DNA from: Orbicella franksi
Taxonomy: Eukaryota
NCBI GenBank assembly: GCA_964199315.1
Contig: OZ116707.1
Coordinates: 22,816,001 to 22,880,000, forward strand
Reading direction: 5' to 3'
DNA length: 64,000 bases
The translations under genes and the position numbers were made by a program. Each line of letters begins with the position of its first letter. The first letter of the stretch is position 1. Below the pieces are notes generated by a model, which saw nothing but the letters and a program-made list of their open reading frames with translations, made no database searches and had not been told where the DNA came from. Shown one piece after another: positions 1-22,100 of the stretch.

Positions 1-701
1 TTGAAAAATGAGTAAAATATGCAAATGAGATGACTGATGACGTCATACACTCAACCCAATATTATATTAAGTACATAAATAGAGCTATCTCGGTCAATTT
101 GCAGTAGAATCCATTGAAACTTGGTAGGCTAATAGTTCTACAGGAAATACACCTATGGCTATAAAACAATTATGTTCCCATGGCAACTCACTCTTTTCCA
201 GTCCCCACCCACTTGATTTCAATATGTTAGTGATTTTCAGCTTGAAAAACATTAAACGAGGCCATGAACTCGAGCTAACATATCTATATGCTTGCTGGAT
301 CGTGCATATGAGACATCACTGGCAAATATCAAAATGGATCACCAAAGGTGGCCAGAAACGCCTTTAATATTGGGCAGGTCTGGAACCCTGTATGTTGCCA
401 TGGTAACAAAACTGTTCAGCTCGTATTGTGGAGCACATTTAGTAGAGTGTTACTGCAAAGAATCAAACATTTCTGATACAAATTGGCTGAGATATGTTTC
501 TTCATCATATTTAATCAAAATTTGGTTGAGTGTATGACGTCATCATTTGGCTAATTTGCATATATTAAAAACGTGAATATCTCAGGAACGAAAACAGACA
601 TTTGAAAATAGTAAACGGCATTTTTCTTCTCATAGAGACTAGTTGTTTAATTTTTAAAATGACTTAGTTAGAAGAGATGCGATTTTCGTCATAGTATTAC
701 T
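1..701. mobile_element. Non-autonomous TTAA-flanked DNA transposon (Kolobok-like), left end outside window
   Basis: Matches 4578-5278; ends ...TCATAGTATTACT followed by TTAA at 702-705. Confidence 0.8.
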
Positions 702-839
702 TTAAAAATAAAATTCCCACGATCTCTACTTTTTTCTAGAAAGAGTAAAAAGAACGACCACGTTGACGTATGAAGTATCTTTCCACCGCAACTTTAAAAC
801 AAACGGATAGAGCATTTGTCCTATCCAAAATGAACTTAC

Positions 840-19100: not shown

Positions 19101-22100
19101 CAAAATAAAACAAAAAAAATCACTCAAATACAACTTTTCAATAGTTCAAGAGTTAAAGCACGGAAATACGGAAGTTGTACAATATCCTCGGATCCCTGAT
19201 TCGCGTCTTTTCAGACGAAGGATTCACAACGATCAAAAATCCAACGCCCCTCTTAGTCTTCGCGGCTCCAAAGTATGTGCGAGGTTGAAGTAATATATCA
19301 AACACTCAAGACCGCGTTTGACCTTTCCGAGAAGAGAGTTGAAAATACAACGCGCAGCGGAGTATTTTTGACGAACTTCGACGTGGTTAAAAGTCTTTGC
19401 AAATTTTACCAATGCTTTATGCCCAACCTTCTTAAAAGAAAGAATAAACGACAGTTATAATCCATAACGTTATGGACAAATGCCATCAATATTAAGAGTT
19501 TTTCTGATATTTCAGGCAAGCACTACACAAAGCCTAGCGGTAGCATCGACAACCATAGTTGCATGCACAGATAGACATACATCCTTTATTACTATGGTTA
19601 CTAAAAAAGTATTCTTCAATTTTCTCTGAAGCGGCGGTTTATTAAACAGGAAATGTAAAGACCCATCTCACAGGCATATTAGAGGATAAGAAGCATTCAC
19701 ACAATTTTTAGCATTATGTATTAGTTTACCCTTGGAACATCTCTCATGCCAGCACTACTTGTCAACACCTCCTTGTCAGCTAGTTCCATCGCTTTATCAA
19801 TTCGATTAAAACCTTTCTGCCAGCGTAGGCGAGCAACCTGTCTGTTGACCTCTTGGACACTGAGAAGTGAGCCAGATAATGTGTTGAATTTGAGAGCCAA
19901 TTCAGGATCTGTACTGTATGGTATAAGTGAAACGTGAGTTCCAGATGGTGACACGCCAAAAACACTGACTAAAGTTTGGACAAAGTTCAACAGGCGAATC
20001 CAATTACGACTGCTACCAATGCTCCCAGATGAGCCAATGATAAATGTAGTATCCATAGGAATTGGACAATTGCCACCTGTTTGGGGAAAGAAGTAAAGTA
20101 AAACTCTAAACGTCGACAATTGAACATACAACAATGAAAATGTAAAAAGTAATCGTATTCTATCCTGCATATCCTGCACTCTAGCGCTAAAAAATAAAAA
20201 AAATCTAATGGCGGACTCGTTTTTTAACATAACTTGTTTTTTAGGCAAAATAAATCCTTGGAGAAGTATGAAGTTGGGGGAGGGGGAGGGGAAGAGAAGG
20301 AAAACAGTGTTGGTCAACAATAGAAACCTTTTGTGATGGAGGAGTTTCACAAATTTAATAAACGAAGAAGACCTGGCAGGAATTATGTGAGCAGTTCAGA
20401 AGAAATACAAACAACGGATTACCTCAATGTACTCTAATAGCGCTCTACTCTAATTATAACAATATGGGTACTCACGTACTGTACAATAGGATGGCTCATT
20501 GGTATAAGGGCACTTATTCAAAGAGGAGCGCTTAATAGAAAGGGATGCTCACTAGACGGAGGGCGCTAAATCTAATTGTGAAGGAAATGCTAAAATTACA
20601 CAGGATATATGCCATGCTAAGTTTCTGCTGGAGATATTACGATAAGGCGTTCCCTATAAATAAGAAGTACTGAAGTGAAGTCTTGAATGCAATAGAAATG
20701 TAATACTGTACCATATTTTTCGTTGGGATCTTTAGGGACACAATCGTTATCACAACCATCAAAACAGCATTTTTGATCATCTGTGCAGTCGTTGTCTCGT
20801 TGGCATTTATCTTCTCGCAGAGGATTCGGATCGCTGGGATTCTTAACATATACACATACTTCTTGGACCCCATTTCGTGGCTTGGGACATCGACCAGGTT
20901 TATCTAAAAAAGGCGAAATTATATTTTGTGGGGATAAATGAAATGAAAGAGAGATGACCAAACTTTGGACAACACCTTTACAAAGTAGTCGCCCATCCTA
21001 GGACTTTAGAAGGGTAATAGGAAACCTACCCACAACACACTTGGGTCTAAATGGCCTTGTAACTCTAGTTCCGGGTATTTCTCTGCCTCCATCGTCCACA
21101 CAGAACGCATCAGACCCTTCAACCTGAATGGGGTCAAATTTGCCACCCCGCGTGCAACTCGGGATAAAACGGCCTGGCAGATAGCTTCTTAACGCTTCCA
21201 GGTAAGCTTTCTGGCATTCGGTAGGATTGGGACCTGTATGAAATAAAATAACCTCAACAGTTGATCATCTTCATAAATGATTGACCTTTAGATTTAGACT
21301 CTGTTTTGATAGGTCTGCAAATCACAATGGATAAGTAAGTTCTTTTTTTCACGCAAAGTGATCCATACCCCATACAGGGAGGCTAGAAAAAATCGAACTC
21401 GCTTCATGCCAAGGAAACCGGAGTTCGTTCGGAGAGACGTCACTTTTACCTGATCTACTCTACCCTTACTCGTGCAATTCTTGTTTTAACGACAATTACA
21501 TTTATGAAGCAACGTTTTGCGAAAATGTAATGAAAGCTTCAACAGTGCTCTGGCATGTGACCTCTGCGATGCTGACGTTTTACTACCAGTTCTAGATACG
21601 AAGTGACCGGGAACTGGCCAAGCCTTCGAATCTCATCCTGTCTCTAGTATCTGAGCAACAGAAGAACGCTACTCGAAGTGCGTCCTTACAACATCTGAAT
21701 CCAAAATCCTTTAGAATAAATTTAAGAAAATTTTGCCATCTATTATTAGATGCTATTATTCGAATGACATTCCTTTATCTACTCGTAATAAGCCAACTAG
21801 AAAACTATTTACTAAAAACACTTAACAAGTTTTATTTTGCTCAGTATTAATAATTTAACATCATATCTTTATTTACTGTATGTTTACTCTTTCCTCTCTT
21901 ATACTAGTTTTCTTTTACCCTAAAATATATGTATGTAACTAAAGGACATATAATTAGTTTACTATATTTTGCCATTTCCTCTTCTTTTTCACTGCACTTG
22001 TTTGCGAACAATAGTGTATTCATGTCGTCAAGTGGAGAAATAGAAAATACAAATACAAATGGTGACGTATATTCATTCATGTCACGGTTTGAGCTAACTT

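Follow-up and report, generated by a model that had tools for sequence, protein, structure and literature searches.

A very recent in-frame cassette duplication in a large modular coral gene, probably produced by unequal crossover between paralogous exons

Introduction

In human LPA, the kringle IV type 2 (KIV-2) repeat is a multi-exon cassette of 5.5 kb whose copy number is variable. Its copies stand head to tail and in frame, they are nearly identical including their introns, and unequal recombination among them alters the length of a secreted protein. A comparable process operates in the long homologous repeats of CR1 and the triplicate region of NEB, where unequal crossover takes place between paralogous blocks inside the gene, with an extra 8-exon block and length alleles that differ by a whole domain set. 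At the level of exon structure, the phase 1-1 exon shuffling modules described by Patthy have domain-border introns of phase 1, an arrangement that allows whole cassettes to be gained in frame.

The coral locus described here resembles these systems in its head-to-tail, in-frame multi-exon cassettes, in the near-identity of two copies including their introns, in its domain-border introns of phase 1 and, probably, in growth by unequal crossover. It differs from LPA, which has tens of copies and a well-documented population polymorphism, in having two near-identical copies, the younger of them known from this one assembly only. It differs from CR1 and NEB in its domain families (CCP and nebulin repeats, respectively, in the latter), and in a breakpoint that was narrowed down to 84 bp of an exon, where two unlike cassette types meet. 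It departs from the classical phase 1-1 modules in having a further intron, of phase 0, inside each VWA domain. By analogy, the mechanism would be the familiar one behind length variation in LPA KIV-2, CR1 and NEB, with nothing new mechanistically. What the locus offers is a base-level view of how a giant modular gene may grow, with a similar exon in otherwise diverged cassettes serving as the crossover site.

Results

Gene layout and the seven-exon cassette

All coordinates refer to the window, the 64-kb stretch of DNA that was analysed out of a genome of 497 Mb; negative values lie beyond the window start, which is downstream in the gene on the minus strand. The flanks examined comprised 80 kb on the low-coordinate, gene-downstream side and 20 kb on the opposite side. 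The window is best explained as the mid-portion of a single, very large coral gene on the minus strand; the encoded protein would be secreted and modular, with thyroglobulin-1, WAP, VWA and follistatin/Kazal domains connected via Pro/Thr linkers. The gene extends at least 35 kb past the window start.

Comparing the window with itself, we found four direct copies between 1 and ~20100. Exon models were derived for one of them, unit B, from reading frames and splice sites, and carried to the other units by alignment. The resulting exon lengths are 347/241/48/210/335/238/45 nt in each of units D, C, B and A, summing to 1464 nt or 488 aa, so that the original prediction of four copies with identical exon lengths and 1464 coding nt per unit is now confirmed by splice-site exon models. 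The copies run head-to-tail on the minus strand, each with the domain order VWA-a / PT / Kazal / VWA-b / PT, AG..GT flanks every exon in all four units, and there are zero stops. Introns between domains are of phase 1 and the intron inside each VWA domain is of phase 0. Because all domain-border introns share phase 1, every exchange that occurs in register gains or loses complete domains and leaves the frame intact.

Unit D, the oldest, occupies 14873..20076 (exons 20076-19730, 18435-18195, 17819-17772, 17682-17473, 17233-16899, 16429-16192 and 14917-14873), and unit C, of intermediate age, 9306..13083 (exons 13083-12737, 12555-12315, 10920-10873, 10782-10573, 10300-9966, 9739-9502 and 9350-9306). 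Unit B follows at 4355..8366 (exons 8366-8020, 7351-7111, 6853-6806, 6715-6506, 6215-5881, 5654-5417 and 4399-4355). Unit A, the youngest and recombinant one, takes up 840..3789 with its first six exons (3789-3443, 2774-2534, 2276-2229, 2138-1929, 1638-1304 and 1077-840), and its exon 7 lies outside the window at -178..-222; all are on the minus strand. The predicted span of 1-20076 was thus right about the four units, and wrong in placing unit A wholly inside it and in letting the array end at the window edge.

Directly upstream of unit D, a WAP exon of phase 1-1 (20712..20904, minus strand) splices in frame onto exon 1 of D, and thyroglobulin-1 exons stand further upstream. These are many, only 30-50% alike and free of recent duplication, in agreement with the prediction of an ancient, stable thyroglobulin region at the 5' side. 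A small local tandem repeat at 33715-34055 (178 bp, 97% identical) is the sole recent duplicate seen upstream of D, and a run of 184 N occupies 45666-45849 within the thyroglobulin-1 region.

The domain assignments are supported by Pfam, with the four VWA half-domain exons scoring 41.8-93.4 bits (PF00092, gathering cut-off 23.8) and exon 4 scoring 28.7 bits as Kazal_2 (PF07648, gathering cut-off 22.8), and with WAP and Thyroglobulin_1 matched just upstream of the cassettes. Reading from the translations, VWA-b has an intact DxSxS metal motif (D-S-S-G-S); in VWA-a the motif is absent, with G replacing its first Asp (G-S-S-G; exon 1 of A, B, C and T1-T3, the last being units downstream of A that are described below). 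The protein shares domain families with VWA-rich matrix proteins (collagen VI, matrilins) and with Kazal/WAP/thyroglobulin-1 multi-inhibitors (agrin, WFIKKN, equistatin-type thyropins), but a search of 1.84 billion representative proteins (query, the N-terminal half of VWA-b) brought up no relative of full length with more than 45% identity. This search gave unrelated multi-VWA proteins at ~30% identity and single-exon fragments at 58-87%. With no full-length ortholog found, the gene is left without a name, and the portions of the literature on coral VWA/Kazal/thyroglobulin proteins that were available to us, PMC6626399 included, contain no description of it. Judging by its domains, the product may be a matrix- or mucus-anchored multi-protease inhibitor.

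Unit ages and the array beyond the window

Sequence divergence orders the units by age. Between D and either B or C, exons are 67-94% identical with a dS of 0.37-0.40 and introns are barely alignable; between C and B, exons are 91-97.5% identical with a dS of 0.14 and introns 72-92% identical; and between A and B, six exons and all seven introns are 100% identical. Identity and dS together bear out the expectation that D is the most diverged, C intermediate, and A and B near-identical including introns, and the pairwise intron comparison that had been proposed as a check gives the order D > C > A=B for exons and introns alike. Values of omega between 0.07 and 0.35 show the older copies to be maintained under purifying selection.

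The array continues past the window start. Downstream of A, at -716..-14779, stand three tandem VWA-a/PT/VWA-c/PT units, T1-T3, of six exons, 1260 nt and 420 aa each. They have a period of ~5240 bp and are 98.9-99.6% identical, with 15 substitutions in ~3.7 kb between T2 and T3 and ~1% difference between T1 and T2, and they are a second very recent amplification, adjoining A/B. The start of the T repeat coincides exactly with the 3' edge of exon 6 in A/B. Further downstream, at -16440..-29380, there are about nine short Kazal/VWA-b units (K units) with compact introns, 86-92% alike, with a period of ~1.37 kb and a higher-order period of 2743 bp; this array is older and is part of the same gene. 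Beyond it, additional VWA and Kazal exons extend to about -35.4 kb. After 27 kb without domain hits, a block of VWA-c-like, Kazal and VWA-b-like exons lies at about -62450..-73230. Tandem Repeats Finder reported nothing on the downstream flank, where the array periods exceed its 500-bp limit.

The young zone thus lies mid-gene, at the border of two cassette types. It had been predicted to sit at the 3' end of the gene, which in fact continues for at least 35 kb through the T and K units. Nor is there the 3'-ward gradient of similarity that had been described, given that values of 98.9-99.6% in the T units are followed by 86-92% in the K units, with no steady rise. A dot plot of window plus flank had been suggested along with these claims; comparison of the window with itself and with its flank shows the four direct copies and an array that runs on past the window edge.

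Transposon insertions in the introns provide an additional record of events. Only C contains the TIR element at 11122-12274, which has inverted ends of 25 nt and is flanked by a TA target duplication; its empty site is kept in A and B. Private to D are an inverted-repeat element in intron 6 (15063-16116), with 222-nt arms that are 79% complementary, and a hairpin at 14633-14820. A dispersed repeat of ~500 bp occurs in intron 1 of B (7457-7957) and, identically, in A (2880-3380), and is absent from C, D and the T units; at least 40 of its genome copies were scored, at 84-88%, out of 1,616 candidates. Intron 6 of B carries a MITE with a TTAA target duplication at 4453-5278, which recurs in A at -124..701 and has more than 40 dispersed genome copies at ~90% identity. 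This element is also found, at 97%, in three units outside the window, T1-T3; A/B and T share the MITE-bearing intron because the T repeat begins at the 3' edge of exon 6. The private insertions that had been proposed to date the duplications therefore stand for the C-only, D-only and A+B-only elements, with the exception of the MITE, which is not private to A and B.

We propose that the cassette was copied in tandem several times, and that the D/C split would have come first, then the C/B split, the MITE insertion, the T triplication and finally the A/B duplication. The pattern of shared and private insertions is as predicted by this order. Word depths of hundreds to 14,000 in a DNA run at 7350-7949 and 8750-8949 mark high-copy repeats inside the introns of unit B.

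The same array in other coral assemblies

Using exon-sized ORF relatives in ENA assemblies, we arrived at long contigs of three other coral samples, and took the WAP exon as a conserved anchor for comparing them. All three (3/3) have the same order of thyroglobulin-1, WAP and a D-like unit, and differ from there on, the number of full cassettes that follow this WAP exon being 1, 2 and at least 2. ERZ25878340, which is collinear with D and C at ~85-90% DNA identity, has the order D, C, a T-like unit, a K unit and a second T-like unit. In ERZ26858540, D is succeeded by another full cassette and by the beginning of a third one, and this assembly carries a tandem duplication of its own at the orthologous place (contig 6284-16163; 97-98.5% identical, period ~5.1-5.6 kb), with two identical exon 1 copies. 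In ERZ25067879, D is followed by four VWA-a-only units (contig 5654-12724; 90-97.6% alike), which occupy the place of C, B and A, and then by VWA-c and a K unit.

Unit D has a positional ortholog in each of the three (3/3). A maximum-likelihood tree of the 347-nt exon 1 places one D-type copy per assembly in a single clade (support 100/100), and groups all non-D copies by assembly and not by position. As judged from this tree, D is therefore old and stable and the rest of the array is remodelled and homogenised per lineage, which indicates concerted evolution. Homogenisation within each genome would also keep exon 1 similar enough to act as a crossover site. The same array has thus been remodelled in a lineage-specific manner across four coral assemblies, the present one included.

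A chimeric exon at the A/B junction

Units A and B belong to a tandem block at -1201..8439 (window part 1..8439; period 4577 bp, 2.1 copies), which aligns with itself over 5,064 bp at an offset of 4577, i.e. beyond one period. A three-way comparison of the exon 1 region of A with those of B and T1, the next unit downstream, places an unequal-crossover breakpoint in an interval of 84 bp, 3538..3622 on the minus strand, within exon 1 of A (the N-terminal half of VWA-a). Unit A carries the B state at all informative sites up to and including 3538, except 3490, and the T1 state at all informative sites from 3622 on. Among the latter is a 43-bp tandem duplication (3814-3856) in the intron upstream of the exon; A shares it with T1-T3 while B lacks it, and it marks the T-type flank. 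The exon 1 sequences of B and T1 are 94-95% identical over ~490 bp, and their flanking introns differ. The recombinant junction falls in sequence common to both parental sites, and the reading frame is kept.

Leaving out the junction, the two copies (-955..3538 and 3622..8115) show 1 difference in 4,494 bases. The sole differing base is 3490, at a distance of 48 bp from the breakpoint interval, and it has the T1 state in A; mismatch repair during the same crossover, or one later mutation, would best account for it. Counting zero or one substitution, the divergence of A and B is below ~0.07% (95% bound), far below the ~1% between this assembly and other samples.

These observations show exon 1 of A to be a B/T1 chimera, as expected if the first exons of B and T1 crossed over unequally. 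The latest event at the locus would then have been a single non-allelic homologous recombination between these two exons, in which 4,577 bp were duplicated to give unit A, with exon 1 as the likely substrate, as it stays alike while introns diverge. We assign a probability of about 0.85 to copy A having arisen by a real recent crossover. Unequal crossing-over had been put forward as the mechanism in the original prediction, and the chimeric exon together with the single difference in 4,494 bases points to its very recent action.

Alternatively, A and B could be duplicates of greater age whose identity is due to recent gene conversion. Conversion does act at this locus: exon 1 copies are homogenised within each genome, and exon 1 of C is 96.8% identical to that of B, compared with 72-81% in the adjoining introns. 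However, the tracts seen elsewhere in the array are exon-sized, and a single tract spanning at least 4.5 kb, with two transposon insertions and all introns, would be needed to account for A and B. The end of such a tract would moreover need to produce a seamless 4577-bp period with a chimeric exon at the joint, and we regard this explanation as highly improbable.

Transcripts, read depth and the status of copy A

A false tandem expansion during assembly would also yield two copies with 4.5 kb of identity, the true order in that case being D, C, B, T1. We looked for signs of copy A in independent material. The DNA run X11, from a very close organism, consists of contigs only, mostly at least 99% identical to the window; its word depth, which is not a copy number, was ~9.1 in the introns of the body of B and ~9.5 in single-copy neighbours. 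In the RNA run X23, at low coverage, the depth of exon 5 was ~5.8 for the A+B type and ~6.2 for C. No A-type reads were seen among the RNA reads, again at low coverage, and every read with T at 8067 also has other T-unit letters. An exact look-up of an A-specific ORF of 141 aa in public assemblies returned no record, a result that carries no information, as contigs built from short reads break within the 84 bp of shared sequence. The junction haplotypes were also sought among JGI metagenome contigs, with 0 matches.

The lack of a twofold signal, of A-type reads and of other records would be expected of an artefact, and these weak hints suggest that the X11 and X23 samples carry one B-type unit and are without copy A. 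They fit a private or polymorphic copy A and an assembly error equally well. The structure of the joint argues against an error, since false duplications usually occur at contig ends or gaps, but no gap (N run) is found near the A/B block, and the joint is in register within a paralogous exon of 94-95% identity with its frame intact. Next to the switch there is a patch in the T1 state, as crossovers often leave, and a mis-join would require chimeric reads that turn from T1-type to B-type within 84 bp. We therefore consider an assembly artefact very unlikely, and retain a recent crossover as the origin of copy A.

If so, its divergence from B suggests that the copy is young enough to be polymorphic, which makes it a candidate structural polymorphism in a secreted protein. 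That copy A is a presence/absence variant still segregating, with exon 1 of VWA-a as a standing hotspot that produces length alleles, is a tentative proposal that we would place somewhat short of even odds. If true, length alleles would differ in steps of 488 or 420 residues in a giant secreted matrix or protease-inhibitor protein, and microbes or settlement surfaces could exert selection on this variation. In any case the locus deserves to be flagged, as gene models and short-read assemblies will be wrong here.

Transcription of the cassette was examined with raw RNA reads from three samples of the very close organism, placed on 5350-11349 at low coverage. Spliced reads match introns 1-5 of an A/B-type unit exactly, A and B being indistinguishable by reads, and the intron joining exon 7 of C to exon 1 of B is spliced in 5 reads. 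All six of these introns have CT..AC ends on the plus strand. The cassette model is thus supported by transcripts, and the duplicated exon type is transcribed and spliced.

Two further features of the RNA reads proved to have other sources. A joint from 5652 to 9964 (4 reads), which could have meant that an entire unit is skipped or that C and B form a hybrid unit, was rejected as a placement tie, as exon 6 of B and C is identical for its first 89 nt and the reads cover at most 63 nt there. Loose ends at 5887 (7 reads) were considered as a possible unit missing from the assembly; their sequence is that of the start of exon 6 in a unit ~66 kb downstream, and this related unit is therefore expressed.
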